A DNA stretch of 64,000 bases from Bugula neritina (taxonomy: Eukaryota; Animalia; Bryozoa): assembly GCA_964035545.1 (NCBI GenBank), contig OZ037771.1:1809628-1873627 (forward strand), written 5' to 3'. Positions within the stretch are counted from its first letter, which is position 1. Every line of letters starts with the position of its first letter. Shown one piece after another: positions 113 to 59,319 of the stretch. A model generated the notes under the pieces. The model saw nothing but the letters and a program-made list of their open reading frames with translations. It had not been told where the DNA came from and ran no database searches. The position numbers and the translations under genes are program-made.

Positions 113-18353
<18,241 letters not shown>

Positions 18354-31904: not shown

Positions 31905-34900
31905 ATGACAGAGTGGTGGAGCTCACAGAGAAATCTCATGTCTCAGCCTCATACTAAAGAACACAGAATGCAGAAACCAACCAACATAAAAGTTGACATG
32001 AAGGACCACAGCATGAGACGAGAGGGAAGAGACAACTGTGGAATCTGTGTGCTCTTCACCATCTTTCTCGTCTTTGTCTTCATGTTTGTGATGATCTGCA
32101 TTGGAGTCGTCTACATCCAAAACCTGCAGACAAACATGGTTAACCTGGAGAAGCGAGTCAGAGACTTGGAGAAGCAGTCTTCCAAACAAACAACCTTCAA
32201 GGTAAGTATACAGGTATATTAATTGAGTAATTGCTGTTAATCTAATAAGTATAAGTTATTATAAGACAAATGTTTAAAAAGAAAATATTTGATTTGTGTT
32301 TTTATACCTTTATTCACTAGACTAACAATCGTTAGTTAGGAAACATAGGTATTTTTACATTGTTATAGCCTACTTGCTATTAACCTTAAGAATATCTTTG
32401 TTTTCTAAATAAACACAAGCTAAAGTAGTTTTAGCAATGAGGAAGTAACCCACATGTCTGGGTAGTTATATGAAAGCAACACACTTTGAATGCTATAAGT
32501 TTATGTAGTGTTGAAATAAGTGACTGTCGAACTTGTGATAGTTTTGTTACACAAAAGATATTTCTGTTTATACAGTCTCCTATTATTGAAGACTTTTTCA
32601 ACTTTGCTGCGAAAAACAAATATTTGTTTTAAAAATATAAATGCAACATTACAATATGTGAAAACTTAAAAGTCATAAACTTGTAGAGAGTTTATTATGA
32701 TATGTACGGCATCCTAGTCATTAGGTGACTGGCTGCTGCAGGTTGAAGCTGTGCTCCCAGGGTAGGCCTATTTGTTTGCAGTAGATAGCAGCTAGCATTG
32801 TTGGCATTATCATATTTCTTTTCAGAGTAACCCAATATTTGAACAATGAATTATTGATAACTATTTTGGCAACCTACTCAAAGATTATATAAGCTATTGA
32901 GCATATATTGAGTTACATGAGACAGTCTGGATCAGGTTTAGTGGTTTGCTATGTTTGGCATCTGAAAATTTATAGCACAAGGAAGTAAACATTAAAGTCT
33001 TAATTCATCACAAATGATGGGTCAATACTTACAGATTGAGCTAAGCTGACAGTGTAAAATTTGAGACATGATTGAGTATAAATTAAAAAAAAGCACTCAT
33101 GTTAAGTTCTAAGCTGCTTAATTTTTGTTAGTAAATGAAACTGTCTGCGAGTTTACAGCATCTACAGCTCTGATAAGTTATACAAGGTAGTTGGAAGAGT
33201 GTGCCTATTGCATACAGAGTAATTGATTTGCAAATATTATAGTTGTATAACAGTATAACAATAATTCTCTGGCTTTTGCGACATTTTCGAAAAAGTTTAA
33301 ACTTTAAAGCCTTGACCTCAGCATACTATAAACTTTCTTTTGATCAGAAAATAAATTTTATATTTCCTATAAGTATAGATAAAAAACCTGCAGGATTTAG
33401 TTCCTGGCGTAGTTGTATCACAGGAGCTGTTGACGGCTCATGACTAGTTTCTGTTATTTCAAAATCAGAGTTCAAAATGCAAACGCACCAGGGTCTAGTA
33501 ATTCTTATGTTGCTGCAATTTTTAGTCCTTTAAGTAAACTTCACAAATCAAAAACTGTTCTGTTTAATGTGCTTCAAAATGAATCAATTTTAATTAGAAC
33601 TCAATGGTAAACAAAACATAAGAGAACTTCAAAAGAAGCAGGTTTTTGAGTGAGTTTTTGAGCAAGTGAGCGAGTGAGTGAGTGATAGAGTGGGTTAGTG
33701 AGCTAGTGAGTTAGTGAGTGAGTTAGTGTGAGTGAGTGAGTGAACTACAATAGTTGGCAACCACAGTTAATGATTTACCCAGCAACTGGAGTGCAAGCAG
33801 GAAATTTTAGGTCCTTGGGATTTTAATAGCTGATAAACCTGGGACTTCCCCTTGTTTCTCACAAAAAAAAACCAATATTCTTTTGTTTGCTTGATGAATA
33901 AGTTCAGATTAGCATTGATTTTGCAAACATAGTAGGTCAACATAGGTATAGAATATGTTGCATTATGAAAATGGTCATAACTCTAACAATTCCGGCTAAA
34001 TTAAGCATTTCGAAAACGTGGAAACTTATCTTGAAATTTTCCTGGAAGGGGAGTGTTCATACATTGATAAAGCGTCACAGTTTAATGTACACTTGATAAA
34101 GATTAATACTAGTACTGAGAGCTTTTATTTTTACTGTCCATCTCACTAACAAAAACAAGCGTCAAATAATCTCAACTTATTTCATCCATCTTGGAAGTTA
34201 CAATTTGCATTAATTTAGAATTCGTTTGATTTGGGAGCTTTTAGGTTCTATAGAACCTTTCTGGGTCCTTGTGTCATAATTTTTCTTCAATTTTCAATGG
34301 TAGTGTGCCCACAAATTTGGCTAATTTTTCAGAAAACTGCAGCTATAAAATTAAAAACCACTTGGTGCACACATGGATGGTTTATTTTGGACTAATGTAA
34401 GCCCTCCTGCTAAGATATTGTTATTATGTTTCCTGGCAGAATTGAAAATAATGAGCTATAGTATAACCATAAATAAAAAGCAGTCAACTGTACAACTTTT
34501 AGAAGTTACCCTGGATTTTTTGTCAGCAGCTGCCAGCTAACAGTGTAAACAAAGTTATCAAAAGTAATCAATACAATATAATACATGCATATCCAGCTTG
34601 AATTCAAACAAGGGTTTGTTTTAATAGATATATTACATTCAATTGCAATATTTATTTAACATTTTTAGAGCCAAGACAATAGAGAGGAGAAGGCAACTCT
34701 AAGAATCAAAAGGAACACACATGATCAAGATGACAATGAGGACAACCACACAAGGCTGGAGCACCACGGTTAGTTAATTTGTATTTCCTTTGCTATAAGG
34801 AATAGTGCAAATAATTTCCTAAGAATAGAATTGGTAACATTGCTTTTATCATATATTTAGGCAGATGCTATGCATGGTAGTTAAAAACTGAAAAATTTAG

Positions 34901-37900
34901 AATTAAATAAAGCTTTTATGAGAAGACGTGAAGTAATTCTTTTCTGTGGGGAATCTAGCAAGATGTGAAAAATATTGCATTTCTGAACGCAACACAGTTA
35001 TGCTTGCGAATTTTGATTAATATGGTTTGTAATCATATGTATAGCTGAATGTTTCATTGGGTGCTACAGATGTTTGTCTAGCTACATGCAAAAATTTCAA
35101 CAGACAGTGTCATTGGTCAATGGCTAATTTCTAAACAGTGACCGTGCAACATGTGTGTAAAGGTAAAATGTATCAACCAAAGTTATGGGATCATCACAAA
35201 GTGAAACTTCATGTTTTATCAGGTATACCCACCCACCATGTTGCCTACATCTATGGAGATCCTAAGAGAGTCGGGGTGCCCGCTTCAAATGAAGGTAATA
35301 AGATATTATATTATTATACTATAGGTGTTGTGTTATGATTTAATTCAGAGTATTATATTGCAGTATACCCAGCATGCTGTGTTATCATAATGCAGATATT
35401 TGTCGATATTTTGTGTGGCACCGCAGTAGAGCTGAACTAATAGCAAACAAAAAAAATGAATGTCTCTCTATTGGAAAACCAGTTAAACAAAACTTATTAA
35501 AACTAACTATTGGGAATACAACTCCTAATAATTTACACACATACCTTGTTGGTAAACCTACATGATGATAAAGGCATCAAGCCTATATAGCTTGCCAAAA
35601 ATATATATGACACCCATACCTTACTTTTACACATGAATATGCATTAATATAGTATATATTAGGAGATGCTATGAAACAAGAGTTTGTTGCAGTCACATGA
35701 TTTAAAATACATTTTCACTCAGCTGGACTCTGGTTTCACAAACATTAAACATTAAATATTAAATCGGTAGATTTGGGATTGTAAGTTCTGATGGCAATTC
35801 AATACAATGAAATTGATGGAGAAGACAATAAATTAAAATCAAAAGCTCTGAGAGATGAATGAAAGCTTAGCAAATTAACTGAAATTGTGAAATAAAAATT
35901 GAGTAAATAAAGCTGCAGTACTAACCAGATTATTATTCTATACACACCACCTTCCTACCATTTCGGCAGATTCATCTCATCAGTTTACAAGAGACCTGTC
36001 TGACGAAGCTCAATCGGAATGTGGAAAAAATTATTTTAAAAGAGATGACAACCAAGCATGGTGTCCTGCCACCAGAAGAAAGCGATATGGGCGTTACCAG
36101 ACTAGTAGTGAGTAGTATTATCATTAATGTCTTCATTTATTGATAATTTTAGGTTTGTTTTCTCCTGACGCTCTGTTTAAACCAACTGGTAAAAAAGAAA
36201 ATGGATGTGATGGCACCTTAATGGTTAATAAGAAACCTGGTGCATTTTTTTGTGCAAAGAAAGTTCACGGACAAGCAGACAAAATGTTGTTAACTCGTAA
36301 GCCAGCTTTGAATGTGTTCAAATCATAATTTCTGCGTGAAACTGATTGAACTACCACAATTTTTCAAAAAAAAAGAATTACATGTTTATATTTTGTTATG
36401 TTATACTATTTTATAGCTTTTCTTTATAATTTTTTGTTGCACTTTGCAAATGACTCATTTTAAAGTTAAAAAAATTGCACTTATTGCCTTTCATTCATAA
36501 AGTTAGCATCACACAACATCTTGTTTTATTATTTCGAGATGAGCAAAATCTTCATGGTAAAACAAGGTATTAATCAATTTTTTTGGTTTTTCATTTAGTA
36601 GCTAGATAATATTTTATTACCAAATGTATTAGATTTACAAATACTGTCAATGAAATTCAACGATATTCACATTATTTAGAAAGTTCAAGGTTTTTGTGCA
36701 AAAGCACCAATACCATATAAATATCTAATGATTATAAAATGTATTTAAAATTGTTACCTTTAATACAAAACAGATAATTTTTAAATTAATTTCTTGGGAT
36801 CTCAATTGTTTTAAAAAAGTTAATCCAAATGAAAAAAAGAAATAGATAGTAAGTATCTGTTAAATGATCATCTGTTTAAACTTGCTTATCGTTAGTTCCG
36901 ATTTACGGCTGTTTATACATTTGCAGGTAACAACCACTTTTACAACTACTTTGCAAAAGCTGGGTGGATGAGCAACCACCATCGCTCCCGTGAAAACTAC
37001 GAGCTGCACAGTGATGGGAAAGTTTCAGTCAAGAAAGCTGGACTGTACATTGTACACGCCAGTGTAAGTATATACACTTATTACAAACCTTCAGCCCTAC
37101 TCACATTTTAAATTAGTAGCTGTTTGATTTTTATTGAATGTTATTCTTTTTTAACTTAGTTTTATTTCTTACTCTAAACAAAATGAAAAGCTAAAAGTTT
37201 CTGGAAAGTTTTATTGAACAGGTATTTATCATTTGCTACTTGTGTTAAAAGTTGCCCTAGAAAATGCAAATATGCAAGTGAAATATTGTTTGAAACTAAT
37301 TCTTATTAAATACAGAAAATGTAGCAGAATTAACACCATTGGCAGTTCAGTTAGTATTATTCACAGTATAAATATATTAATTTGTAATTTTTACTATTTC
37401 TTGTAGTTTTTACATTTTAAAGTATAGTATCTTTTGCTTAGCATTGATACTAATTACTGTATGCTATAAACTCAAATGTGTTGTAGACTTGTAAAAGGAT
37501 GCCACTAGTAAAAAATTGTGCTTCTTGAAAACTATTATTATAGTTTTGACAAAAATGTTTTATTAAAAGTCTATTAAAGTACATCAATTAACATAGTTTA
37601 TGCTGAGCATACTATAAAAATTTGTCTATACTTTCATAGTCGATAACTAAATTTTAAATTTTCTTTTTAGATGCACTTCAGTGACTTAAAAAGAGGGGAT
37701 TTGCCACACTACGGAGTATACAAGACTAACCAGCAAGGGGGAAACAAAACTTTAATTAGCAAATGTGTTGTGACAATGTTTGAAGACCCAGAAGACGATA
37801 TACTAGGAGTGTACCCATGTCAAGCGTGGCAGGTGAGGCATACATTGCAAATCTTAATTTCAATGACATTTGCTTATGCAAAATGAGTGGAAAAAACAGT

Positions 37901-38242
37901 CATTACCTTATTACGTAATAGAGCCTGCTTTTTATTGCTAAATATAAAAAATGAAGTACAAGATTAATTTTTAACATTATTATACAGAAAGTTTGATTAT
38001 TAAAACATTGCGAATTCTTAAGCAGTTATTAAATATTCTCAATTGGTATTAATATATTTCAAGCAATTAAATACTTTCCAAGCTAATGAATACTTATTAT
38101 TATTTTGTGAATCTTGTAGCTGGTGCCTCTAGAAAAAGGAGATTTAGTCTACCTACGAATTTCTGGTTATACTTGGTTTAGAGTTGAAAAAGAAACTTTC
38201 CACCTTGCCCTGATACGCCTTAACAAAGAAGAAGTAGAGTAA
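31905..38242 (+). CDS. TNF-superfamily ligand, copy 1 (Eiger/EDA-like type II membrane protein, about 342-354 aa)
   Basis: Exons: 31905-32201 (cytoplasmic tail, TM ICVLFTIFLVFVFMFVMICIGVVYI, coiled coil), 34669-34768 (furin site RIKR), 35223-35294 (HHVAYIYG, strand A-like), 35970-36107 (RRKR), optional 36153-36188, 36927-37063 (GWM...YELHSDGKVSVKKAGLYIVHAS, the TNF-homology B'-B-C signature), 37671-37832 (two Cys), 38120-38242 (LVPLEKGDLVYL...ETFHLALIRL, strands F/G/H). All GT-AG, frame continuous, stop TAA. Confidence 0.88.
33645..33741. repeat. (GTGA)n-type microsatellite in TNF intron 1 (paralog 50773-50860)
   Basis: GAGT/GTTA tetramer arrays. Confidence 0.8.
33841..33850 (+). promoter_or_regulatory. 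NF-kB-like site GGGACTTCCC in intron 1 of TNF copy 1
   Basis: Fits GGGRNYYYCC; identical at the paralogous position in copy 2 (50956-50965). Confidence 0.55.
34039..34047. promoter_or_regulatory. STAT/GAS-like site TTCCTGGAA in intron 1 of TNF copy 1
   Basis: Fits TTCNNNGAA, about 190 bp from the kB site; identical in copy 2 (51147-51155). Confidence 0.5.
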
Positions 38243-38257
38243 AAATGTAGTAGAACA

Positions 38258-38440
38258 AACCTAGCAACTAGGCTAGCAACCAGCCTAACAATAAACATGG
38301 CAACCAGCCTAGCAACCAACCTTACAATAAACATTGCAACCTACCTATAGCAACAAGCATAGCAACTGACCTAGCAACCAGCCAAGCAACAAGCATAGCA
38401 ACTGACCTAGCAACCAGCCAAGCAACAAGCATAGCAACTG
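38258..38440 (+). repeat. 11-12-bp TAGCAAC-core tandem repeat in the TNF 3' UTR (paralog 55196-55298)
   Basis: Repeated CCTAGCAACCAG/CATAGCAACTGA units right after the stop codon. Confidence 0.85.
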
Positions 38441-40882
38441 TTAAAAGTTAGAAAAGCATATCTAAGCAGCTTTTAAGTTGGTATCTCTTGTAGCTTTGCA
38501 AAAATAGAAAATAAAGCACAATAAGTTCAAGCTGCTTTTATAAGTTTGAATGTTCAAGTTGCATATCTAACCTTTTTGAGTGTACATTTTAGTAAAGTGA
38601 GACAATTGTTTCATCTTTGCTACTGTATGTACAATTTATTTTGTTTTATATTTTTGCTGTAAAATAATATTGTTTCATATATTTATATATTTGTATATAA
38701 CCATGCATACAGCTTTCTCTATAATTTGATAGTATTTGATATTTTCTTGGAAATCCCGGTACATAAAATTACATATTTTATATAATATACTATCTCACTA
38801 TATTTTTAGTCATATATACATATATTATTGATTTACTTAAATATAAGCTTGTGTCATTTACAGAATAATTTCAACAACGAAATTATGTTACTGTGAGCCG
38901 TTTTTTCTGAAAATGCAAATATTCTGAAATTCTCTATAAAAATAAATGTATTAAATTGTTTTTGAATTTTCTTGCTAATGAAAACACTTTTACAGAAATA
39001 TTTAATGACTATTCTGATTAAATTAGTTTCATGCATTTAGCAAAGTGCTTTTTGTATTTAAACAAAGATATTGTAGTTGTATTATTTTACAAATGCAGTG
39101 TTGATTGATCTATAATTAAGGTGGGTTACCTACTACTAATTGGAAGTGACAAATTATCAAAACTTTCTAATTTAAGTGTTTTAGATTTTAATAATTTGAT
39201 GCATTACAATACTTTGCTTAGAAAAGAAAGTTGTAATTTTGCAATAATAAATCAATATCAGTTCAAGTTTGAAGGATAATTAAAAAAAGCATAGGTGTGT
39301 TTTTAACTAAGTTATTGATATTTCTATAACCAATATTTAATGTCTTTACAGCTCTTTATTAAACTTGCTTCTAATAAAATAGTACACTTGCTCTATATAA
39401 AAAGATTACAGAAAATTTGCTTTAACATTCACGTCAAGTTATATATTTGATAATATTGTGCATATTTAAAAATAGTCCTTACAAAAACAGAGATATTAAA
39501 ACAAATTCTAAGAATTATGACCAGATAAGAAAATCAATCAAATGGAAAAATTTGCTTATAATTTTATATTCGGCTGCAACAATTTTCCATCTGAGGTTTC
39601 TTTCAAAGATACCATTGTTTGATTTAATAGTAGGTTTGAACAGCTACTTTTACAACTGTCTTGAACCAATTTATTAGAAAGTAAAATAACATAGGAAGTA
39701 ACAGGCTAACCTTTTGGTTATAATAACTGATTTGGTACAATACTTCCCATAGTGGGATGGTTGGCAGAGATTAGAAGTTAGGGGCCTGTGGTTAGCATAC
39801 CAGTGGAGGCCAAAATAAAGAGAAACAACATTGAGTAATATAAAAATGTACACCAGGCTGTAAAACAACATTATTCAGATACCAATATATTATGTCACCA
39901 TTTATGAGCATCTAAGGAATATTTAGTTTAAAGCTATATATTTGTTTGTTAAAAAAGCAAAATACATATTTTCAAAATATTCTTCTTCAGACACAGCTAT
40001 AATATAAAATAATTCAACTTAAAGGCTGAGGAAAATTGTACTAATACCATAGACTCAATAATAGCTGTAAGCTTGCAGTGTAATTAAATGATTGTAAGCT
40101 GTAAATTACCTGAATGTAAAGATGAAACTATTGTGTAGATAGCTAAGGGATTAGGTAAGAGTTCTTGGAACAGCTAAAACTTGTAAACTGGGCTGTCATT
40201 TTCAGACCAGAATTGGTGCCAGCAAGTTGGTAATTCTTATATATTAGCTCAGCTCACTTAACTGCTACAGTTTCAAGAAACTCATTGTGATAAACTTACT
40301 TATAACTACTAGTCCAGTCACTGAATTTCTGTTTTGTCAAGGTTGGTAAAGTTTACCTTAACTTGTTTAATATATCTTAAAAAAATAAAACTACACAGAG
40401 TTGATATAAGTACATTTTATATTGAGAGCAATTTGAAAATAACGTAGGGGGGAGTTTTTTAAATAAGTTTTCTAACTGTATATAATAAACATAAAATTTG
40501 TTGCTTTTGTTATTAATTAAATATGTAAATAATTAGTACTGATTCGTAAGCAATATTAAATTAAAAAAAACTAATGTCAACGTGGTGAAATATTAGAATA
40601 ATGAAAAATTAACTTGTTCGTGTAAAGCTGGAATTTTGTTTGTGTATGGAAGCCATGTTTGAATCAGTTACAGACTGTAAAATCTACTTTCATTATAAAC
40701 ACCTTTATTTCAGTAATTTTTCAGATAGTTTTTCTGAAGTATATATTATTCTGCTTGAGTTTTGACGTCAATTAACTTTAAATTCTGTTTTAAGAATAAG
40801 CAAGCATAGTATACACATCTGATGGATAAAGGTATCGTATTTAATTTATTGTACTCTATTTTTACAGATATATATTGAAATC

Positions 40883-41284
40883 ATGAGAACTCCACCTAGA
40901 CAGAGAGCAGACAACTCTTGTCCCTGTATCAAGCAGAAAATAAAAGATAAAAGACAAACAATATTGGATATTGGCTCAGAGAGAATACATAAACTAAATG
41001 CTAAAGACAGAAATCTCCATAAAAGGCTGGTAGTACTCAAAGCCCTAAAACTAGTGAACCGTCTGCCAGCAAAAACCTTCCAAAAGCAACTGTTGGCTGT
41101 TTGCCCGGAGGTGGGGGTGTGCTTTCACACTGGCAAGAACCCCCCTCTACCAGAAATCAGAGAAGCACCAGCTATTGAGACTAATACTACCGCAGCTGAA
41201 GAGTCAGTTTTAGATATATTTGTTGATGACGACACAGTAGCTTCTGTCCTTGAAGACTTTGATGAGTTCTCAGAAAGTTATTAG
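40883..41284 (+). CDS. SERTA/IER-like Cys/His-framed protein, subtype A copy 1 (133 aa)
   Basis: Single coding exon with a TTTACAG acceptor just upstream of the ATG. RQTILDIGSERIHKLNAKDRNLHKRLVVLKALKLV resembles the SERTA/IER helical hairpin; acidic C-terminus; three near-identical open copies in the window. Confidence 0.75.
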   Translation: MRTPPRQRADNSCPCIKQKIKDKRQTILDIGSERIHKLNAKDRNLHKRLVVLKALKLVNRLPAKTFQKQLLAVCPEVGVCFHTGKNPPLPEIREAPAIETNTTAAEESVLDIFVDDDTVASVLEDFDEFSESY

Positions 41285-42093
41285 TGATAGTTGACTATCT
41301 TAATCAGATAAAGGAGTTGTGCTCTTCTGTACATATAATATGATACAATAGATTTATACTTAATTATTGTCTCCTCCTGTTCCAACTACAGATGAGCTCT
41401 TATTTATGCTGCTTTTATGTATGACTACATACACTGTGTTTCTTTTACTAATAAATGAATATAAATATTCATAAATGTTTAATAAACACTTTATACTTGA
41501 TGGGCAGGTGCTTAACTAAAAGAAGCTAATGCTAGTATATATGCAAAACAATTTCACTTATATAACTAATCACTATTTTTTCATATATATAGATGAAGAA
41601 ACTGTATGTTCAGAGTATTTTTTGCAAGGTTGAAGTGCCAGCTTACCATCTTATAGTATTTCAAATAAATAATAACTTTAAAATAACTCTTTTATGTTAA
41701 TATATTCAGTTATACTAATTACTATTATAGGCTTTAAACCTGTTCATTAGCATTCTAAATCCTTATTCTACTAGAAATGGGAAATTATAGCCTGACTGCT
41801 AATGATAAGAAAGAAAAAGTGACTAAATTTTACAAATGAATTTATTCTCAAAGTGAACAGAGCCATCTGTTAAATACAATTTATATTTTCTAGCATATAA
41901 AAGACTGCACCTCTACATACATATACCAGTTACATATTATATGAATAGAATCTCCTCAAAACACAAGACTAGGACAGCACGCATAAAAACATTTAGAAAG
42001 AAATGGAAATGGAATTTGTAGATTAAAGTTTAGTTAGAGGCTAATGTTGTGAAGAGTTGAATCTTTCTGCATATGTTAGCTCAGACTAGTGGC

Positions 42094-42636
42094 TCACTGA
42101 TTAATTAAATAGTCTAACATAGACATTATGGCTTCATCACTTTCAGGATCATCATGTAAAGGTGTGTGAGTTGTCTCCCCAGTACTGGGTGTAGAATCAC
42201 CAACATTACTCGCATTCCCTGCAGTATTTGGTTGGTTATTAGCATGTCCATTGAGGTCATGACCTTCAAGATGGTCACTGTGCACAACCTGACTTCCACT
42301 TTGACCCTCTTGTCTTTCTAGCTCTTCATTTTGGCCATCTTGTACTCTACTTCCTTCACCATTGTTTGAAGAATTTGAAGGAAGGACATGGGAACACAAT
42401 CCTTCTTCTGGACACATTTTCAAAAACTGCTTTCTAAAGCGAGATTTGGACAAAAAGTGAATCCTGCAGAGGGTGTTACGAAGAGCCAATTGCTTTTGCA
42501 AGTTTTTATCTTTTGCTTTGAGCTCTTCAAGATTCTCCACTCCTAGTTCAAACCATTGTTTTCGTCTTTTCTCTACCTTCCTCTTGATGCAAAAACAAGA
42601 GCGATTGCCTCTGTTTCTTCTAATGGTGACTCTCAT
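42094..42636 (-). CDS. SERTA/IER-like protein, subtype B copy 1 (180 aa)
   Basis: RKQWFELGVENLEELKAKDKNLQKQLALRNTLCRI carries a SERTA-like L..NTL.RI motif; CFC...CPEEGLCSH; disordered linker and acidic terminal helix DEAIMSMLDYLINQ. Confidence 0.78.
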   Translation of the reverse strand: MRVTIRRNRGNRSCFCIKRKVEKRRKQWFELGVENLEELKAKDKNLQKQLALRNTLCRIHFLSKSRFRKQFLKMCPEEGLCSHVLPSNSSNNGEGSRVQDGQNEELERQEGQSGSQVVHSDHLEGHDLNGHANNQPNTAGNASNVGDSTPSTGETTHTPLHDDPESDEAIMSMLDYLINQ

Positions 42637-42692
42637 TTTTTACCTATGAAATAATTTATCTTTTAGGTTTGAGGTTTTTTACTGCTTCGATC

Positions 42693-42785
42693 TGTGTGTA
42701 TGTGTGTGTATGTGTGTGTATGTGTGTGTATGTGTGTGTATGTGTGTGTATGTGTGTGTATGTGTGTGTATGTGTGTGTGTGTGT
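42693..42785. repeat. (TGTGTGTGTA)n microsatellite upstream of B1
   Basis: 10-bp unit array. Confidence 0.95.
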
Positions 42786-44258
42786 CATAGTCTAAACAGC
42801 ACCAATTAAATTATAGTGCAATTAATTTATGTATTGTGAGAATGAAATCTAGGCTAGCATGGTCAAATCCAAAGTAGGTACAGAAATGTACTCAGCTGGT
42901 GTGTTTGACTTGTAAAATGAGACTCAACTATAACTTCAAACATGAGAATATTCTCACATCAGAATGAAATAATTTTGTTAAACAATACACTTTGCACTGT
43001 TTTGCCAGTAGTTGTTTGAAAAATCATCTTGTTTTGTATCTGGAAAACTTATAAACAAAGCCAACTTTAAAATCAATGAATTTTAAAATAGAATTAAAAT
43101 TTAAACTACTTTTATAGTCAGTGTTTTAAATCTTTCTTTTCAAAAACTTGTATAGTTTGTAGTACTCTTACCTTGTTAGAAGAACTCCCTGTATTCAATC
43201 AGTTACACTGTTTTATATTCAAATTGAGTTCTTTTTACCAACTCTTATTGAGTATTTTCTGTATTTCAGATCTGTTAGAGAGTGGAAACACAACCTGCTT
43301 CTACCAAAACGTAAATAGAAATGGTGATGGTGGCAAAGCTCTGATAATCTTTTGGCTTTATTAGTAGTTGCAGCTTTCTATTGTGTTTATTCAAATAGGC
43401 ATTCATAAAATAGCTTTTTCTCCTGTAATTAAAATAATATGCAGAGTTGTAATGAACATATTATAGAATTGTAATATAATTTTATCTATTGTAAGCATAT
43501 TTTTTTTCAACTTTATTGTCCTGATTGATATTAAATTACTGTGAGAAGACATATTGCAACTATCCATGCTACCATCTAATCTTTAACATTACAAATTATT
43601 TTTTAGATCCATTTTAAAAAAAATATCTCCCACCATTTTTCTAATTCAATTATTACAGTAAAAGAGTACTTCAACCATAAAAACTATAAGTAACTTTTAT
43701 AAGAAAAATAGTGTTTGGTAAATAAATATTGCTTGACGGTATTTAAACTAAAATCCAAATGATCTAAACAATTGTTTAACAAACATTTATGAATATCTTC
43801 AATGAAATAATAAGCTATTTAGAATGAGAAATTTTTGTTAAATGTAGCCATAGGAAAACAATTATGTAAATTAATTAATAGCCAATTAAGAGCTATATCA
43901 GCTATAGTGTGCCCATATCAGCTATAGTGTGCCCTCAATTAATTGTCTGTTTATGCAACAGAAATGTTTCCAGAATAGAGAATGAAACTCTCAACACAAT
44001 AATTTTTGATGTGAGTACATTTTAAATTAACAGTTGTTTAAATAGAATTGAGGTATATTTTCTTGGAAAAATATTTTCAACACATAAACATAAACATAAA
44101 AGTTGTTGCAAAGGGACAAACTTTGTTACTAAATATATGTAAATTAATAGTACTGCATAATGACATAAGAAATGTGAAAAAAATTATATAATGTCAAAAT
44201 AGTGAGAAAATTCAATAATTAAAAAGTTTCAGTCAAGCCTCAGAACTTTGAAAGCCAT

Positions 44259-44400
44259 GTTTCAATTAGTAGACTTTAGAAAGAATAGGTTGGAAACAGA
44301 GGTGTAGAGTTTTGGTTGCCTTTAGTTTATAAACTAAAAGCAACCAAAACTCTACACCTCTGTGTCCAACCTATTCTTTCTAAAGTCTACTGATTCCAAC
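44259..44400. repeat. 142-bp spacerless near-perfect palindrome
   Basis: Arms are symmetric about GTTTA|TAAAC (centre 44329/44330) with only a few mismatches. Confidence 0.92.
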
Positions 44401-44754
44401 GGAAAATAAATAAAATATAATTAAGCATCAAACTGGAATGTTAAAAATAATATTTGAGTTTAATGCTTAATTATTTTTATTTATCAAACAAACAACTTCA
44501 CAAAATATAAACATTATCAGAAGTTTAAAAATTGCCACCACATTGGTGAAAAGTAGGTTTTTCTTCAAATATTTTATTAAATTAAACATAATTTCAGCCT
44601 GATTTTTGGGACACTCTCTCAAGATAGATTAATCTGCTCGAGTTTGACCTAAATTAATTCTGAAGTCAAAATGAAAGCATGCATAGTATACATATCTTGT
44701 GGACAGATGACTCATGTTTAATTTGCTTTACTCTAGTTTTACAAAGTTGAAATC

Positions 44755-45038
44755 ATGATAATTCGACACCAGGACAAAGAGCAGATGACTCTTGTTTTTG
44801 TATGAAAGAGAAAATAAAAGATAAAGAAACAATATTGAATATTGGCTCAGAGGGAATACACGAACTTATAAAAACCAAAGACAGAAATCTTCATAAAAGT
44901 CTGGCTGTACATAAGGAATTTAGAAAACAATTTTCAGGAGCAACTGTTGTCTGCTTGCCTAGAGGTGGAGTGTGTTTACACACTGAAAGGAATTCAGGAA
45001 TACCCCCCTACCAAACAGCAGAAGAAACTCATGCATAA
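44755..45038 (+). pseudogene. Subtype D pseudogene copy 1 (degenerate A-like)
   Basis: The ATG at 44755 (same GAAATCATG context as the A genes) is out of frame with TPGQRADDSCFC..KIKDK. The second helix is partly deleted and the acidic tail is missing. Confidence 0.75.
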
Positions 45039-45129
45039 CTTTTTATAGATGAAGAAACTGTATCTTCAGTACCTACTGAAAAAGTTTGTTGAAAAGTTAA
45101 AGTGCCGGTTTGTCATCCTAAACAAATAG

Positions 45130-45202
45130 CCTTCAAATGAGATTGAACCCATGACTATGGATTTACCAAGCCAATGCTCTAACCTCTAGACCACAGCTGC
45201 TC
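45130..45202 (-). mobile_element. tRNA-derived SINE head or tRNA-like fragment
   Basis: The minus strand has A-box TGGTCTAGAGG and B-box GGGTTCAATCTC; no clean acceptor stem. Confidence 0.5.
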
Positions 45203-45757
45203 CCTATTTCCATGAAGCAAATTCATTAGGTTATCTTTATGCAGTGCTTTTGATTCAATGACCAATAGCAAGGCACAAGCTTTCTATTAATCAGTTATTA
45301 CTTGTAGTGCAATCTTGCAAAATATGTGATGCCATGCTACATTAAATGTACTTTGAACTGGTTTGAATAAATTTAATTGGTTTTTTGCATGTGTTTTATT
45401 CTTAAAACGCTGGTAACTCAAGTTAAATTGTGATTCGTTCTGGAAATAACAAAATATTTGGCCTTCTGTTGCCTTGCTGCACACGATTACTTCATGCACA
45501 ATCATAGTATTCAAAAGTAATATTATTAAGTATATTATAGTTATATTTTTCAAGATTTATTGAAGTTTAAAAGAATTAATTGTAGATGAGTAAATACAAT
45601 AAATGAAGTAAAAGGAAAATGTGTCAAGTTACACAATATAAAGAGACAAAAAAGTTTGTCAAGACAGCAGGTTAAATTAGTAAAATTATTTACACCAACA
45701 TTTAAAACTAGTATTAGGGTTATAAATATGCTTGTTTATATATTGGTAAGTTGTATT

Positions 45758-46378
45758 CTAGAGTGTCTGAAGATATTGTTCCAGGAAGTCTGTAGCTCTC
45801 TTACATTCATCTTCATCATTATTGAAAGCTTGAGGGAACTCCTTAGAGCCAACAGAACTAGGCAAGAGAACATTGTGAGTAAAATTATCACTGTTGCTAC
45901 TTTCTTCCATCTCTTGTATGATATTATGAAGATCTCCCTCTTGGTCATTATCAGTGCATCTCTGTTCACCAGAGTAACCACTGGGGTTCTGTTCTTCAAG
46001 ATAATTACTAAAGCTCTCAAATTCAGGGCTAATCTCACTGTTATACTCCATTTGACCTTCACCTTGGTCTCCATTGACTTCACTTTCATCATCGCTACTC
46101 TGTGCTTCAAAAGATGTGAGCACATGGGTGCACAACCCTTCTTCTGGGTGCATCTCTAAATATTGCATTCGGAAATTGGACTTAGACAGCAGCTTTATGT
46201 TGTTTCTTGTTCTACAAATTGCCAACTGTTTTCGTAGGTCTCTTTTCTTTTTCTTCAGCACTTTCAGATTCTCTTTTCCAAGTTTCAGAAGTTGGTTTCT
46301 TTTTTCGCCAATTTTGTAGTCAATGCAAGCACATGCACTGCTACCATCTGCCCAGCTTCTTCTAATAACAACCCTCAT
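45758..46378 (-). CDS. SERTA/IER-like protein, subtype C copy 1 (206 aa from MRVVIRR)
   Basis: Start placed at 46378 by homology to B (MRVTIRR) and an upstream TTTCAG acceptor. CAC...HPEEGLCTH motif; long acidic tail ending DFLEQYLQTL. Confidence 0.78.
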   Translation of the reverse strand: MRVVIRRSWADGSSACACIDYKIGEKRNQLLKLGKENLKVLKKKKRDLRKQLAICRTRNNIKLLSKSNFRMQYLEMHPEEGLCTHVLTSFEAQSSDDESEVNGDQGEGQMEYNSEISPEFESFSNYLEEQNPSGYSGEQRCTDNDQEGDLHNIIQEMEESSNSDNFTHNVLLPSSVGSKEFPQAFNNDEDECKRATDFLEQYLQTL

Positions 46379-47818
46379 AGTTGTGTCTGAAATCAGAACC
46401 CACACATAATTATGATGGTTACAAAAATGCTTATAATGTTTTTGTGTTAAAGAGAGTTTACAAACTCCAATATATGCTACCCTCAGCTAAATATTACACT
46501 TCTGTTTAGAAAAAGTAAAGAATATTTACTGTAACATCGCTGCAAGAACCTATATCATAGTCTTTTTCTTTTATTTTTATTCAAAATTGTGGAATGAAAA
46601 TAAAACTTTCATGCAATGAAAAATTTATATTTTACATAAAATATAGTTTTTATGTAAATAACTTGAAGATGTCATAAAATACTTTGTTTAATTTAAACAA
46701 TTATACAATAATTCCTAGATTTTGAAATAAATTAGACATACCTGTACAGAATTGGTAGCTGTAGTTGAAGTCAGATTTTTCAATCAAATGAGTTTCTTTA
46801 TCTAAGTGATACTAAGGAATGCAAAAATTGAAGCTTCTTGTTGAAATTGAGAGCACAACTTACTTCTACAAGAGTAAAGTGTAAAATGACTTCAAATAAA
46901 AGGCTGGAACAGCTAAGTAATCATATTTAATAATCCCCAAAACTTTTCTATTGTGTGAGAGCTATCTGGTAATTCAAAGTATTTTATAATAAAAAAAGAA
47001 ATAAGCTTGCAGTGTAATTAAATGATTGTAAGCTGTAAATTACCTGAATGTAAAGATGAAACTATTGTGTAGATAGCTAAGGGATTAGGTAAGAGTTCTT
47101 GGAACTGCTAAAACTTTGAAACTGGACTGTCATTTTCAGACCAGAATTGGTGTCAGTAAGTTGGTAATTCTTATTAGCTCTACTCGTTTAACTGCTACAG
47201 GTTGAAGAAACTCATTGTGATAAACTTACTTATAACTGCCGGTTCAGTCACTGAATTTCTGTTTTTTCAAGGTAGGTAGAGTTTACCTCAACTTATTTAA
47301 TATATCTTAAAAAAGTAAAACTACACAGAGTTGATATAAGTATAGTTTATATCAACAGAAATATTAAACTAAGGAGGGGAATTCTTTTGAAATAAGCTTT
47401 TCAACATACGGTAAACATGAAAGTTGTTGTATTTGTTATTAAACATGTAAATCATTATAGTACTGATTCATAAGCAACACTAAATTTAAATAAAATAAAT
47501 GTCAATATGGTGAGAAATGCAAATAGTGAAATATAAACTTGTTGGTGTAAGGCTGACTTTCTGTTTGAGTATGGAAGCCATGTTTGAATCAGTAGATTGT
47601 AAAAATCTACTTATATTATAAACACTTTTATTCCAGTATTTTTGCAGATAGTTTTTTTGAAGTTATATTATTCTGTTTGAGTTTTGATATATATATATAT
47701 ATATATATATACTCTAAAATCTGTTTTAGGAATAAGCAAGCATAGTATACACACCTGATGGATAACGGTCACGTGTTTAATTTATTGTAATCTATTTTTA
47801 CAGATATATATTGAAATC

Positions 47819-48220
47819 ATGAGAACTCCACCTAGTCAGAGAATAGACAACTCTTGTTCCTGTATCAAGCAGAAAATAAAAGATAAAAGGCAAACAATAT
47901 TGGATATTGGCTCAGAGAGAATATATAAACTAAATGCTAAAGATAGAAATCTCCATAAAAGGCTAGTAGTACTCAAAGCCCTAAAACTAGTGAACCGTCT
48001 GCCAGTAAAAACTTTTCAAAAGCAACTGTTGGCTGTTTGCCCGGAGGTGGGGGTGTGCTTGCACACTGGCAGGAACCCCCCTCTACCAGAAATCAGAAGA
48101 GCACCAGCTATTGAGACTAATACAACCGCTGAAGAAGCAGTTTTAGATATATTTGTTGATGACGACACAGTAACTTCTGTCCTTGAAGACTTTGATGAGT
48201 TCTCAGAAAGCTATGAGTGA
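47819..48220 (+). CDS. SERTA/IER-like protein, subtype A copy 2 (133 aa)
   Basis: Open paralog of 40883-41284. Confidence 0.75.
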   Translation: MRTPPSQRIDNSCSCIKQKIKDKRQTILDIGSERIYKLNAKDRNLHKRLVVLKALKLVNRLPVKTFQKQLLAVCPEVGVCLHTGRNPPLPEIRRAPAIETNTTAEEAVLDIFVDDDTVTSVLEDFDEFSESYE

Positions 48221-49555
48221 TAGTTGACTATCTTAATCAGACAAAGGAGTTGTGCTCTTCTGTACATATAATATGATACAATAGATTTATACTTGATTAT
48301 TGTCTCCTCCTGTTTCAACTACAGATGAGCTCTTATGTATGCTGCTTTTATGTATGACTACATACACTGTGTTTCTTTTACTAATAAATGAATGTAAATA
48401 TGTTCTAACTTTTACAATGTCTATACAAATATAACAATTAAATACACAAATAAAAATTTAATGACTGACTCACAAGGTAATAAAACTATAGCAATGTAAT
48501 ATAAATCTATAAATTTGATATAAATATAACAATATTTGAATTTTAACACATAGCCCATAGACTTAAAGCTTTTTCAGTCAACTCAGCTTTGCTATGGCCC
48601 CGAACTATGAAAGCACATATCATATACATCAAAGCAACCTAATCCCCTATCAAAGAATAATTATAATTATATAATTTAGCTAAGTTCTAATCACAGTGCC
48701 AATTTGACAAAAATAAACTATTTCTAACACTTATCTGTTCTATAAATACTTTACAGTTAGAGGTTTATTGCTTATTTTCTGACTATCTGCTGGATATATA
48801 ACCAGGAAGAATAGGCTTGCAATACCTTTAAACTATTATAAGTAGCAAACTTCAGATGTTAACTTAAACAATTAACTACAATGTGATTGGTCCATTATGC
48901 AACATCCTATAGCAGCATACTATTGCAATCAGGAAAGCACATCAGCAGGGGTGTATGCATAATATATACAGCCATGGGGGTCAAGAGGTGTTGGTTTGTT
49001 TGGGTATAATTATTCCGTTTTTGCAAAGAACAACTTCAACAAACGAGTACAAAATAAGGTAGCTATAGTTTATAAATTATTTTTATTCTTAGTACAACAA
49101 AAGCCAAACGGGATTCATGCTATTTTTGCTTATGGTAAATTTATTGATTATATTACATCAAAAGCTCAACAAAACAATAAAACTATTATAGCAATATGAT
49201 AAATAATTCTTGTTGAATTCAGTAACCTCTTCACTTTTTCTCAAAAATGTTCCACAATTATTTTTGATTTCTAAATCTTGACATTTCTTTGATTTCTGAG
49301 AAAAATTAAATTTTAAATCAAAACAATGTAAATATAAAAAAACTGTGTCGTAAGCAGCAATTTGTCATGCATTGATTGGGAGTGTATAGTTTAATAAAAC
49401 ATTTGTGACACTACTGCATATATGTGACAATCTGCATCCACCCCTTATCACTATAGATACTTCAAAAGCAAGGCACTCGATTGGGTAAAGCAGAGTAGCC
49501 AGGAGAGGTTGGAAATTAAAAAGGAATTAAAACATCTGCTAAGAAGCCAACCAGA

Positions 49556-52500
49556 ATGACAGAGTGGTGGAGCTCACAGAGAAATCTCATGTCCCAGCTT
49601 CATTCTAAAGAACACAGAATGCAGAAACCAACTAACATAAAAGTGGACATAAAAGACCACAGCGGGAAACGAGAGGAAAGAAACAACTGTGGAATCTGTG
49701 TGCTCTTCACCATCTTTCTCGTCTTTGTCTTCATAGTTGCCATGATCTGCATTGGAGTCGTCTACATCCAAAACCTGCAGACAAACCTGGTTAACTTGGA
49801 AAGGCAGTCTTCCAAACAAACAACCTTCAAGGTAAGTATACTGGTATATTATTGCGCAATTGCTGTTAATCTAATAAGTATAAGTTATTATAAGACAAAT
49901 GTTAAAAAAATATTTGATTTGCTTTTTAATACCTTTATTAACTAGACTAATAACCGTTGGTTAGGAAACATAGGTAGTTTCACATTGTTATACTTGCTGT
50001 TAGCCTTAAGAATATCTTTGTTTTCTAAATAAACACAACCCAAAGTAGTTTTAGCAATGAGGAAGTAGCCCACATGTCTGACTAGTTATATGGAAGTGAC
50101 ACACTTTGAATGCTAAAAGTTTATGTAGTGTTGAAATAAGTGACTGTCGAACTTGTGATAGTTTTGTTACAGGATACATTTTTGTTCATACAGTCTTCTC
50201 CTAAGAGACACTCCTTCAACTCTGCAACTTAAAACTAATACATGCTTTAAATAATATTATATAAATGCAACATTATATGTGAAAACTTAGAAGTCATAAA
50301 CTTGTAGAAAGTTTATTATAATATGTACGGGTATTCTAGTCATTAGGTGACTGACTGCTGCAGGTTGAAGCTGTACATACTCCCAGCGTACTTGTTTGCA
50401 GTAGATAGCAAGCAGTTTGCATTGTTGGCATTATCATATTTCTTTTGAGAGTATTTTGATATTTGAGCGATAAATTGTTGATAATTATTTTGGCAAGCTA
50501 CCCAAAGATTATATAAGCTGTATCTAGTTCCTTGTATGGTATCACAGCCCCATGACTAGTATTAGACTAGTTTCGGTTGTTTCAAATTTAGTTTTCAAAA
50601 CACAAACGCACCAGGGTCTAGTAATTCTGACGTTGCTGCATATTTTAGTTCATTAATTAAACTTCACTGATCAAAAACAACCTCTGTTTAACATACTTTA
50701 AAATAAACCAATTTTAATTAGAACTCAATGATAAACAAAACATACATGTAGGAGAACTCCAAAACAAGCAAGTTTTTGAGTGAATTTTGAGTGAGTTTTT
50801 CAGTGAGTTTTTGAGTGAGTGAGTGTGTTAGTTAGTGAGTGAGTTAGTGTGAGTGAGTGAACAACAATTGTTGGCAACCACAGTTAATGATTTACCTAGC
50901 AACTGGAGCGCAGGGGAATTTTTAGGTCCTTAGGATTTTAATAGCTGATTAACCTGGGACTTCCCCTTGCTTCTCACATAAGACCCACAGGCTTTTGTTT
51001 GATTGATGAATAGCTTCAGATTAGCATTGATTTTGCTAACATAAGTATGTCAACATACATATATATGTTGCACTATGAGAATATTCATAACTCTAACAAC
51101 CCACAAAATTAAGCATTTCACAAACATGGAAACTTATCTTGAAATTTTCCTGGAAGGGGAGTGTTCATACATTGATAAAGTGTCACAGTTTAATGTTCAC
51201 TTGATAAAGATTAATATTATAACTAAGAGCTTTTATCCTTACTGTCCATCTCACTAACAAAATCAAGCGTCAACTAGTCTCGTTACTTTATCTATCTTGG
51301 ATATTTAAATTTATAATGAAGCTAACTGAAGTTTTAATGTGATAATTTAAATTTGTTTGATTTGGAAGCTTCTAGGCTTTATAAAACCTTTCTGAATGCA
51401 TGTGTTATAGATTTTTTCAGTGGTTGTGCGCCCACAAATATATGGCCATTTTTTTCAAAAAACTGCAGCTATGAAATAAAAAACAAATTGGGGCACACAT
51501 GGATGGTTTATTTTTGACTAATGTAAGCCCTCTTGCTAAGATATTTACATTATGTTTCCTGGCAGAATTGAAAGTAATGAGCTATAATATAATTATAAAT
51601 AGAAAACAGTCAACTGTACAACTCTTAGAAATTACCCTGGATTTTTGTCAGCAGTTGCCAGCTCACAGTGTAAACAAAGTTATCAAAAGTTATCAATACA
51701 ATATATATGCATATCCAGCTTTAGATTAAACAAGGGTTTGTTTTAATAGATATATATTAGATTTAATTGCATGATTTAGCGCGGAGACAGTAGAGCGGAG
51801 AAGGCAACTCTAAGAGTCAAAAGGAACACACATGATCAAGATAAAGGAGAGGACGACCACATTCGGCTGGAGCACCACGGTTAGTTAACTTGTATTACTT
51901 TTACTAGGAAATATGTAACATAAATATGTTGTATATTTCCTCAGAATGTTATTTGGTTCGTTCTATTGTTATACTGTGCAACACGTGTGTAAAGGTGAAA
52001 TGTATCAACCAAAGTTATGGGATAATCACAAAGTAAAACTTCATGTTTCAGGTATACCCACCCACCATGTTGCCTACATCTTTGGAGATCCCAAGAAAGT
52101 TGAGGAGCATGTTTTACGTAACGGTAACAGAAAAATATATAACAATATAGCTGTTGTAGTATAATTTAATTCCTTAATATTATATTACAATATAGCTGTC
52201 GTATTATTATAATGGAATAAATTTGTCATTAGTTTACATGGCATCAGCAAAACTCTAATAATAGTAAACAAAAATCTTTTATCAGCTAAATTCGCATCTC
52301 ATTGGAATACTAATTTTGCAAAACCTGGTGACTAAATATTTGGAGTACAACTCCTACTAACTCACACACATACCTTGTTAGGAAAACTACATGATAATAT
52401 ATAGACATCAAACCTATAGTTTTTCAATAATGTATGACACTCATTCCTTAACTTTGCAATTTAGTATGTAATATATTATGATCTCTATTAAGGCATGCTA

Positions 52501-55180
52501 TGTGATCAGCTTTCATTACGTACATCTATATTTAAAAATATACTCACGGTCAGCTATAGACTGTGGTTTCACACACCTTAAATTGAAAATTACAAACATT
52601 GGATTTTTGATTGTAAATTCTGATGACAATTCAATACAATAAAATTATTGAAGAAAAAAATAAGCTGCAATTAAAACCTGTACACGCAACTATTTTGTTC
52701 TTTAAAGCACAATCAAAGGCTTGCATTATATATGAAACTTGAATCAACAATCGATTTAATGAATAAATTGCACTCTTGCTGTGAAAGATTGATAAAGTTA
52801 AAAACTTGCAAACAATAAATCGAGCAATATTTGCACACATTTTTTATGAAATGAAAAATAGAACAGAACTCATTAACTTTTGGAGACAAATTACAGCTGA
52901 AATAAAAGCTTTGAAATAAAAGTTGCATGGATGAAGCTGCAGTGCTAACCAGATTATTATTCTATACACACTACCTTCCTACCATTTTGGCAGATTCATC
53001 TCATTGGTTTTCAAATGACCTGTCTAACTACCATCGATCGGAATATGGAAACAAGTATTTTGAAAGAAATGACAACCAGATATGGTGCCCTGCCACTAGA
53101 AGAAAGCGATATGGGCGTTATCAGACTACTGGTAAGTACATTAGTACTATCACTGATGTTTTCATTGCATGGTTAAACGTTTTAGGTTTAATTTCTTCTG
53201 ACGCTCTGTTTAAACCAACTGGTAAAAAAGAAAATGGATGTGATGGCACCTTAATGGTTAATAAGAAACCTGGTGCATTTTTTGTGCAAAGAAAGTTCAC
53301 GGACAGGCAGACAAAATGTTGTTAACTTGTAAGCCAGCTTTGAATCATAATTTTCGTGTGACACTGATCAGGCTACCACCTAACGAAGCCCAATTTTTGT
53401 TTCGAATAAAATGAGGCACAAATTTATAATTTAATATTGTAATATTTTATAGCTTTTCTTTATAATGTTTTTGTTAGACTTTGCAAATGATGACTCATTT
53501 TCAAGTGAGAAAATTGCCCTTATTGGCTTCTTTCCATAGTTAAGCATGACATAACAGCTACTTTTAATATTTTTAGGATGAGCAAAAATTTTTCGATAAA
53601 ATAAGGTCTTAAACTAACTTTTTTATTCACTGATAGACAATATTTTTAGTACCAGGTTCGTTGGATTTACAAATACTCTCAATGAACTTCAGCTGCACAT
53701 TATTTGAAAACTTCCTTCAAACTTTTGGGACAAGCATTTTTATCATATCATAGTTAATGATTAGATATAATTATTTATAATTGCTATATACCTTTAATAC
53801 AAAGCAGATACATTTTAAATTTGTTTTTAGAATTTAAATTATTTTAAAAAAAATTTCAACTAAATTAAATAAAAGAACTGACCTCTAATTATCTGTCACA
53901 GGATCACCTTTTTTAAACTTAACTTACTGTTACACCCTTTTGACAATTTTTTTACATATTTGCTATTTGTAGTCAAAAATCCCTTTTACGACTACTTTGC
54001 AAAAGCTGGGTGGATGAAAAACAATCATCGTTCTCATGAAAATTACGAGCTGCACAGTGATGGGAAAATCTCAGTGAAGAAAGCCGGGCTGTACATTGTA
54101 CACGCCAGTGTAAGTTTAATAAAAGCAACGTGGTGGTATTATAACAAAATCAAATGCTACTTCAAATTGTTTAAACATATTTTTCTCACATTTTGAATTA
54201 GTTATAACTGTTTAATTTTTTTGAATGTTTCTCGTTTATCTTCGTTTTATTCCTTAATAAAAATCTATAAAGTGCATCAACTAACAAAACTTATGCTGAA
54301 CATGCAATCAAAATTATCTACTTTCGTAGTAAATAACGAAATTTCAACTTTACTTTTCAGATCCATTTCAGCGACCTAACGAAAAGGGATAACCCATACT
54401 ATGGAGTATACAAGACTGACCGTAATGAGAATAATACAGCTTTAATTAGTAAATGTGTTGCGACAACATTTGAAAACCCAGAAGAAGATATACTAGGAGT
54501 GTACCCATGTCAAGCGTGGCAGGTGAGGCATAAGTTGCACTTGTTTATGCAAATAAAGTAAGAAAATAATAAACAGTTAACTGCTTTCAAATTGCTAAGC
54601 TATAACGCTCATTAAATAGCTGCTTTGTCTGAGTTGCACAAGAATACAAGAAAAAACATGTTGATCTAAGTGAAAATATTTATCAATATTAGATTTTGTT
54701 ATAAACTTTGCAAATATCTGTTGAGATAGGTGAATTAATTTGGATGTGCTAAAACATACAATCTTTTAAAATTTAGTAAAACAGCACTACCCAAACTATT
54801 GTAGATATGTTTAACTACAAATTGTAATATTTAATTTTTTAGAATTTAATTTTGTTTTCTGTTGTTGTACTATATATAAAGACAGCAAACTTCAATCTAA
54901 TTTTTCAACATTACATATTATACAAAGAGCTGAATGACTAACACATATTGGGAATTCTGAGACAGTTTTAAGCATCTCAGCTGACACTAATGTTTATAAA
55001 TAATTGAATACTTTCTAATTTAATAGATATTTAATAATGTTTGTTTTAATCTTGTAGCTGGTGCCTCTAGAGCAAGGAGATTTAGTTTACCTGAAAATTT
55101 CTGGTTACAACTGGTTTAGAGTTGAGAAAGAAACTTTCCACCTTGCCCTGATACGCCTTAACAAAGAAAGACTAGAGTAA
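49556..55180 (+). CDS. TNF-superfamily ligand, copy 2 (paralog of 31905-38242, about 335-347 aa)
   Basis: Exons: 49556-49831, 51780-51879 (RVKR), 52052-52123, 52994-53131 (RRKR), optional 53186-53221, 53973-54109 (GWMKNNHRSHENYELHSDGKISVKKAGLYIVHAS), 54361-54522, 55058-55180. Exon lengths equal copy 1 except exon 1 (7 codons shorter). No stops or frameshifts. Confidence 0.88.
50956..51155. promoter_or_regulatory. Paralogous kB (50956-50965) and GAS (51147-51155) pair in intron 1 of TNF copy 2
   Basis: Same motifs and near-identical spacing as in copy 1. Confidence 0.5.
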
Positions 55181-57141: not shown

Positions 57142-57195
57142 TTTTTACCTATAAATGAAGACATAATATAAGTTTAAGGTTTTTTACTGCTTTGA

Positions 57196-57323
<128 letters not shown>

Positions 57324-58821: not shown

Positions 58822-58963
58822 GTTTCAATTAGTAGACTTTAGAAATAATAGGTTGGAAACAGAGGCGTAGAGTTTTGGTTGCCTTTAGTTTATAAACTAA
58901 AGGCAACCAAAACTCCACACCTCCGTGTACAACCTATTCTTTCTAAAGTCTACTGATTCAAAC
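58822..58963. repeat. Paralogous 142-bp palindrome
   Basis: Centre 58892/58893; duplicate of 44259-44400. Confidence 0.9.
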
Positions 58964-59319
58964 GGAAAATAAATAAAATATAAAAAGGCATCAAACTGGA
59001 ATGTTATAAATAATATTTAAATTTAAGGCTTAATTATTTTTATTTATTAAACAAACAAGTTCACAAAATATAAACATTATCAGAAGTTTAGAAATTGCCA
59101 CCACATTGGTGAAAAGTAGGTTTTTCTTCAAATATTTTATTAAATTAAACATAATTTCAGCCTGATTTTTGGGACACTCTCTCAAGATAGATTAATCTGC
59201 TTGAGTTTGACCTAAATTAATTCTGAAGTCAAAATGAGAGCATGCATGTAGTATACATATCTTGTGGACAGATGACTCATGTTTAATTTGCTTTACTCTA
59301 GTTTTACAAAGTTGAAATC

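Follow-up and report, generated by a model that had tools for sequence, protein, structure and literature searches.

A family of probable SERTAD-derived genes with a candidate zinc site in the bryozoan Bugula neritina

Introduction

Hairpins of the SERTA and IER type have been recognised as ligands of PP2A-B55 only recently. The N-terminal hairpin of IER2, IER5 and IER5L is a PP2A-B55 inhibitor, described by cryo-electron microscopy; the contacts of IER5 to B55 include I10, I13, S14, K17, L30, H31, K32, L34, L35, V36 and V39, and the substitutions S14A, K17E and L30E abolish binding (10.1101/2023.08.29.555174). CDCA4 contacts B55 through L56 (position i of helix 2), R58 (i+2), V60 (i+4), L61 (i+5) and K44 (PMC11446282). 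The designed B55 binder B55i keeps the lysine and has alanine at the serine position (PMC11446282), so a small residue other than serine is not fatal. Most invertebrates appear to keep SERTA and IER genes at low copy number and highly conserved, and the bryozoan orthologs compared here are almost invariant. We describe here a multi-copy gene family from a stretch of 64,000 nucleotides (G000:C7:1809628-1873627, hereafter the window) of the 216-Mb, AT-rich genome of the bryozoan Bugula neritina. The family is very probably homologous to bryozoan SERTAD and carries conserved cysteine and histidine residues that may bind zinc.

Vertebrate SERTAD1-3 and CDCA4 (TRIP-Br) and Drosophila Taranis resemble the Bugula proteins in having a helix-loop-helix with Leu at i, a basic residue at i+2 and an aliphatic residue at i+4, as well as an acidic C-terminal region. 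They are unlike them in that a metal site is undescribed in the SERTA literature examined. Our literature search returned no paper describing a zinc site on SERTA, none joining SERTAD with bryozoa, and none on the family itself. Should the zinc staple proposed below exist, a fold with no metal site in the literature searched would have gained one, and the staple might yield a soluble hairpin, the human hairpins having been reported as too insoluble to measure (PMC11446282). A fast-evolving offshoot of 17 copies in which two residues essential in IER5 have changed is also a natural mutational series for the rules of B55 binding, with a reach limited to a family so far found in one genus and known from its genes alone.

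Gene family and selection

A regular-expression scan found a 70-residue motif, C-x-C-x58-[C/H]-x5-C-x-H, in genes of three subtypes, A (40919-41128), B (42597-42388) and C (46333-46124). The window holds four further copies (47819+, 57141-, 60945- and 62380+), plus the 3' part of an eighth at its edge. The first three genes, with the motif elements of subtype A, are as follows.

40883-41284, + strand: subtype A gene of 133 aa in a single coding exon; acidic tail behind a basic core (residues 1-82)
40919-40927, + strand: CxC of the subtype A gene; only the first Cys is ancestral in SERTAD, the second being specific to the family
41102-41128, + strand: C-terminal motif of the subtype A gene; variable position (C), PE-x-G-x, then the invariant C-x-H
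42094-42636, - strand: subtype B gene of 180 aa, with CxC at 42597-42589 and the second motif at 42414-42388
45758-46378, - strand: subtype C gene of 206 aa, with CxC at 46333-46325 and the second motif at 46150-46124; variable position occupied by His

Across the genome about 17 open reading frames (ORFs) of the family are intact (5 A, 6 B, 5 C and 1 of a fourth subtype, D), with one frameshifted C and two relics in addition, all of these counts being lower bounds. The original prediction, made from the letters of the window alone, that three strongly diverged subtypes align without gaps and with exactly 58 residues between the motifs, agrees with both the scan and the alignment, and the core alignment of the whole family is gap-free. 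The subtype consensus sequences have only 25-51 of 68 core residues in common, and synonymous sites are saturated or nearly so between subtypes (dS 1.5 or more); the fixed spacing is therefore old.

Within subtypes the ratio of non-synonymous to synonymous substitution rates (dN/dS) in the core is 0.08-0.19 for B, 0.16-0.49 for A and 0.21-0.63 for C, mostly 0.1-0.4, and mostly lower than that of the tails (0.29-0.88). The core is under purifying selection within subtypes. Since its dN/dS is well below 1, the family members are, as judged from genomic DNA alone, translated genes, or were so until recently. Core composition is strongly basic, with 19-23 K/R against 6-8 D/E, and the N-termini are basic without the cyclin A-binding KRK motif of TRIP-Br/SERTAD proteins. 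The tails are acidic (14-29 D/E) and of low complexity, and close in a short amphipathic stretch, an arrangement that may be compared with the SERTAD activation domain. Every member has an AG after a T-rich tract 6-15 nt upstream of its ATG (15 nt in the subtype A gene at 40883-41284), which suggests an intron in the 5' untranslated region (UTR). Human SERTAD2 has such an arrangement, with a one-exon coding sequence behind a 5' UTR intron (PMC2671481); in the family the intron is predicted from the acceptor-like sites.

Relationship to SERTAD

The genome has a SERTAD gene of its own (locus L011, G000:C2:1880379-1880792), which reaches the Pfam SERTA profile PF06031 only just at its gathering cut-off of 25 bits (25.8 and 24.1 bits), and close orthologs (P0008-P0028) include that of Watersipora subatra. 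In hhalign the family matches this single SERTAD with P 1.4e-5 and the bryozoan SERTAD orthologs with a probability of 92% and P 6.9e-7 over 69 columns. The alignment to the bryozoan orthologs is gapless across some 62-69 columns and reaches beyond the Pfam box on both sides, where the matches include a Cys ahead of helix 1 and, following helix 2, L-[SP]-x-x-x-F-x-x-Q. Column permutation finds significance separately for the N-flank, the SERTA box and the C-flank (p 2e-4, 6e-5 and 6e-5), and of 15 registers only register 0 gives a positive score. A hidden Markov model built from the family only scores 23-32 bits for 16 of 17 SERTADs, above all 500 shuffles of each. In direct unfiltered HMMER, the best non-family frame among 2,896 is the genome's SERTAD (25.9 bits, P 5e-10, or E ~0.002 for 3.4 million frames), followed by a second SERTA-like ORF on C1, with background from 7 bits. 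In prefiltered genome searches the family profile missed SERTAD and the SERTAD profile missed the family because the prefilter was loose. The ESM Atlas gives SERTA clusters at the top of its list for A (0.87, 178 features) and B (0.78), which we treat as leads only.

The relationship is a distant one. Family and SERTAD share only 11-16 identities in 60 columns and are joined by a long branch of about 2.8 changes per site, while the SERTAD orthologs barely change; the tree splits the family from the SERTADs and has no outside root, so the duplication is undated. Among 1.84 billion representatives, a profile search recovered three proteins, each from Bugula, and no relative outside that genus. 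As far as sampled, the family thus appears confined to the Bugula lineage, its nearest named proteins being the Bugula neritina hypothetical proteins EB796_000177, EB796_006500 and EB796_006498. Resemblance to the Pfam SERTA and IER (PF05760) profiles had been expected; in the Pfam search no member matched either, and in this the family departs from vertebrate SERTADs and Taranis.

On these comparisons we consider homology to bryozoan SERTAD very probable. The SERTA-like core of the original prediction stands in this form, along the gapless columns, and not as a direct match to SERTA or IER in Pfam. The family is best filed as divergent and apparently SERTAD-derived rather than as a canonical SERTA protein, because it falls short of the Pfam score and lacks the combination of Ser and Lys in helix 1. 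To speak of a new domain architecture was an overstatement, since the three-helix core and the first Cys are already present in ordinary bryozoan SERTAD; on present alignments the novel parts are C16 and the C-terminal PE-x-G-x-C-x-H motif. Shared with bryozoan SERTAD, besides the Cys before helix 1, are R25, L62, F67 and Q70, the 11-residue spacing from the basic position of helix 1 to Leu(i), the single coding exon and the acidic tail. Unlike it, the family has Gly for Ser and Arg or Asn for Lys in helix 1 and lacks the N-terminal KRK/RxL-type motif, and it is multi-copy and fast evolving where bryozoan SERTAD is single-copy and nearly invariant.

Descent from the IER gene was rejected. The canonical IER gene of the genome (L016:1243-2334, - strand, on G000:C8) encodes about 355 aa and does not align with the family, so the IER resemblance is, as far as these sequences indicate, convergent or retained from a shared superfamily. 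Weak Pfam matches to Ribosomal_L22e and DNA_pol_lambd_f are inconsistent across members, and these identities were likewise discarded. The second SERTA-like ORF (L039:1423-1653, + strand, in the region of G000:C1:23874093) has only 76 aa and matches Pfam SERTA with E 0.005; it has C-x-H before helix 1, an acceptor-like AG before its ATG and no C-terminal motif.

The cysteine and histidine cluster

In subtype B numbering, the residues concerned are C14, C16, C81 and H83, with the variable C/H position at 75. Of 68 sites, C16, C81 and H83 are the three that evolve most slowly, and they do not vary among 24 sequences; C14 is kept in all 24 but one copy of the C5 cluster, where a short stretch is deleted. 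On the family tree under LG+G4, the chance that at least four of the seven subtype B Cys and His residues stay invariant is P 0.006, or 0.026 without Cys14. Their invariance exceeds chance, though modestly. C14 is ancestral, since 11 of 13 SERTAD orthologs have it; C16, C81 and H83 are new.

The variable position is Trp (TGG) in subtype D, in the genome (L032) as well as a second lineage (P0029). Both frames are intact, and the core codon changes between these two lineages are synonymous in 7 cases and non-synonymous in 5. The Cys-to-His swap in subtype C had been taken as the sign of a zinc ligand. With Trp in an intact subtype under purifying selection, the swap is uninformative on ligation and the position is no obligatory ligand. 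Of the proposed metal clasp, the five-position motif is therefore lost, whereas the invariance of CxC and CxH makes a zinc site plausible.

AlphaFold2 (AF2) models of A and B have the same three helices with a predicted local distance difference test score (pLDDT) of about 80. Helices 1 and 2 span residues 15-42 and 46-61 in B and 14-40 and 45-60 in A (pLDDT 86-92), and CxC lies where helix 1 starts, CxH where the core ends. Helix 1 is modelled with 28 residues, helix 2 with 16 and helix 3 with 11, lengths that allow the chain to return to the start of helix 1 (28 against 16+11). In one AF2 model residues 6-7 are bridged to residues 80-81. We hold an intramolecular zinc site formed by C14, C16, C81 and H83 to be slightly more likely than not.

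THAP zinc fingers of the C2CH type have C-x2-4-C and C-x2-H spacings and a beta-alpha-beta fold. They are alike in placing a Cys3His ligand set at the two ends of a domain, and unlike in that the family has CxC and CxH on an all-helical model. Identity with THAP was rejected on this difference in spacing and fold, a weak Pfam match being found in only 2 of 18 members (best E 0.019).

Contacts to PP2A-B55

Helix 2 has L, M or I at i, K at i+2 (M in one case) and L, V or I at i+4 in all four subtypes, while i+5 is reduced to A or T in many B and all C. When the B55 contacts are mapped onto the family alignment by motif spacing, IER5 itself being unaligned, subtype A is identical at 7 of 11 IER5 contact positions, with Arg for K17. 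It has I, I and L-H-K-x-L-x-V at I10, I13, L30, H31, K32, L34 and V36, and shares the basic loop of the IER2/IER5/IER5L hairpin, although the family loop is two residues shorter than that of IER5. The equivalent of CDCA4 K44 is kept only as Arg, in subtype A. In helix 1, the replacement of the SERTA Ser by Gly that the original prediction described holds for all members; the loss of the conserved lysine, also described there, is true of B, C and D, which have Asn, and not of A, where the residue is Arg.

Judged by these residues, it is an evenly balanced question whether subtype A helix 2 docks in the B55 pocket as a competitor or adaptor. Docking of helix 2 of B, C and D appears unlikely; these subtypes most likely bind B55 weakly or have changed partner.

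Proposed mechanism and alternatives

In our best explanation, the family would be a Bugula-restricted expansion of genes derived from a bryozoan SERTAD gene. One Zn2+ held by C14, C16, C81 and H83 would staple the open end of the hairpin, which ordinary SERTA/IER proteins leave unclosed, and rigidify the hairpin, with the C/H/W position serving in packing and not as a ligand. Helix 2 would dock in the PP2A-B55 substrate pocket through L(i), K(i+2) and L(i+4) together with the basic loop, and the proteins would either compete for B55 with its substrates and the parent SERTAD or link it to new partners. The acidic tail may serve in transactivation or in binding partners, like that of TRIP-Br/SERTAD. 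Zinc binding and function are predictions, with a zinc site slightly more likely than not; taken as a whole, SERTAD-derived, zinc-stapled, B55-competing hairpins with acidic tails have in our view about equal chances of being right or wrong. We would go further only as speculation and regard as improbable that these are zinc- or redox-switchable PP2A-B55 regulators, with subtypes that differ by degrees in B55 affinity, and that they and genes for type II membrane (possibly TNF-like) ligands were amplified together in Bugula as a single signalling cassette.

Several results weigh against this explanation. No family member matches PF06031 even at E up to 10, and the SERTADs fall just short of E 0.001 in the profile search of 1.84 billion representatives. 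One intact subtype B frame (L033, G000:C5:9013002-9013538, - strand) has lost the first Cys by a 4-residue in-frame deletion and is a natural ligand mutant; its counterpart in another lineage (P0004) is intact. The terminal bridge of the AF2 model lies in a low-confidence part (pLDDT 49) and is absent from the second model. Gly stands for IER5 S14 in all members and Asn for K17 in B, C and D, and fold searches (PDB, VIA-wide, Atlas, BFVD) returned generic helical matches only, not IER5.

The alternative that survives best retains SERTAD descent and zinc binding and holds that the proteins are no longer B55 ligands, having turned to another partner (a chromatin reader, a transcription factor or a CDK) or to nucleic acid through the very basic core. 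The changes from Ser to Gly and from Lys to Asn strike two positions essential in IER5, the branch from SERTAD is long, and other partners of vertebrate SERTADs exist, such as CDK4 and PHD/bromodomain proteins (PMC2671481). The retention of L(i), K(i+2) and the aliphatic i+4 in four subtypes, and the contact matches of subtype A, speak for continued B55 binding, and we hold the loss of B55 binding to be possible but distinctly less probable than our best explanation.

A further alternative, somewhat less likely again, accepts SERTAD descent and holds that the Cys and His residues are not an intramolecular zinc site: they would be buried packing residues, would take part in lipidation or redox chemistry, or would each form half of a metal bridge between the chains of A, B and C dimers. 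Residues that are not ligands (G32, L39, L62, F67, L72, E77 and G79) are equally invariant, C14 is ancestral in SERTADs that lack the partner ligands, one copy tolerates its loss, and the co-duplication of the subtypes as a cassette would suit heteromers. Set against this are exactly four candidate ligands in two matching pairs, CxC and CxH, at both hairpin ends, and the joint origin on the family stem of C16, C81 and H83, which are the slowest sites. A structural disulfide is unlikely because no signal peptide is evident.

It is very improbable, and already largely refuted, that the SERTA likeness is a convergence of basic amphipathic helices and the family an orphan or of viral or transposon origin. 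The low identity, the blank in Pfam and a Maverick/Polinton beside the C5 cluster could be cited for it; three independent segments fall into one gapless register that includes features beyond the Pfam box, the C5 cluster lies outside the terminal inverted repeats of the Maverick, and PHROG and BFVD give no match. The viral or transposon family that the original prediction had allowed for was thus sought and not found. Non-functional duplicated DNA or an assembly artefact is a negligible prospect: three copies are broken, yet core dN/dS is well below 1, copies differ by ~10% at the DNA level, gene order is identical in the independent NCBI assembly GCA_010799875.2, and a DNA sequencing run covers the locus.

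Genomic organization

The family lies in two tandem clusters, C7:1.850-1.897 Mb and C5:9.010-9.017 Mb. The remaining features of the family in the window are as follows.

41478-48401, strand not assigned: 7-kb cassette (B, relic, C, A), with a 90% identical duplicate at 55973-62965
44755-45071, + strand: decayed A-like copy between the B and C genes; ATG out of the homologous frame, helices 2-3 affected by deletions, a stop in frame
47819-48220, + strand: second subtype A gene, 133 aa
56599-57141, - strand: second subtype B gene, 180 aa
59328-59633, + strand: second decayed A-like copy
60328-60945, - strand: second subtype C gene, 205 aa
62380-62784, + strand: third subtype A gene, 134 aa
63605-64000, - strand: third subtype B gene, running past the end of the window; entire gene at G000:C7:1873235-1873774

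The single sequencing run found behaves as DNA, and the Logan contigs L049-L051 are colinear with genomic DNA and so are not transcripts. In the NCBI assembly, P0007 (L052:1915-2529) joins a subtype C core to a subtype B C-terminus, a hybrid that suggests recombination or gene conversion between subtypes.

A gene of 7 kb for a type II membrane protein, itself duplicated, is interspersed with the cassette duplicates. This multi-exon gene lies at 31090-38821 and 48759-55684 (+ strand), its first exon encoding a type II transmembrane segment (31905 and 49556), and more copies occur near G000:C7:1886658, 1905938 and 1912131. We presume a likeness of its exon at 36896-37084 to TNF/Eiger strands, an identity that exon-by-exon Pfam and PDB searches left unconfirmed.

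The Maverick/Polinton adjoining the C5 cluster (G000:C5:8994055-9007764; L058, L044) is degraded, with terminal inverted repeats. Named by eye, it contains polymerase B in several pieces and ATPase-, integrase-, capsid- and protease-like ORFs. The family is not its cargo, as the element ends before the cluster.

A TG-rich microsatellite (42687-42790) is found directly upstream of every C7 subtype B gene and is enlarged to ~700 bp at G000:C7:1880200-1880920. Near 45160-45210 there is a short dispersed repeat with a DNA-run depth of ~12,000 and many loose ends. Elsewhere in the window, a very basic 161-aa ORF at 25295-25780 (+ strand), without a Pfam match, is possibly transposon-related, and an RH1 domain exon at 18009-18353 (- strand, E 6e-14) probably belongs to JIP3/JIP4.

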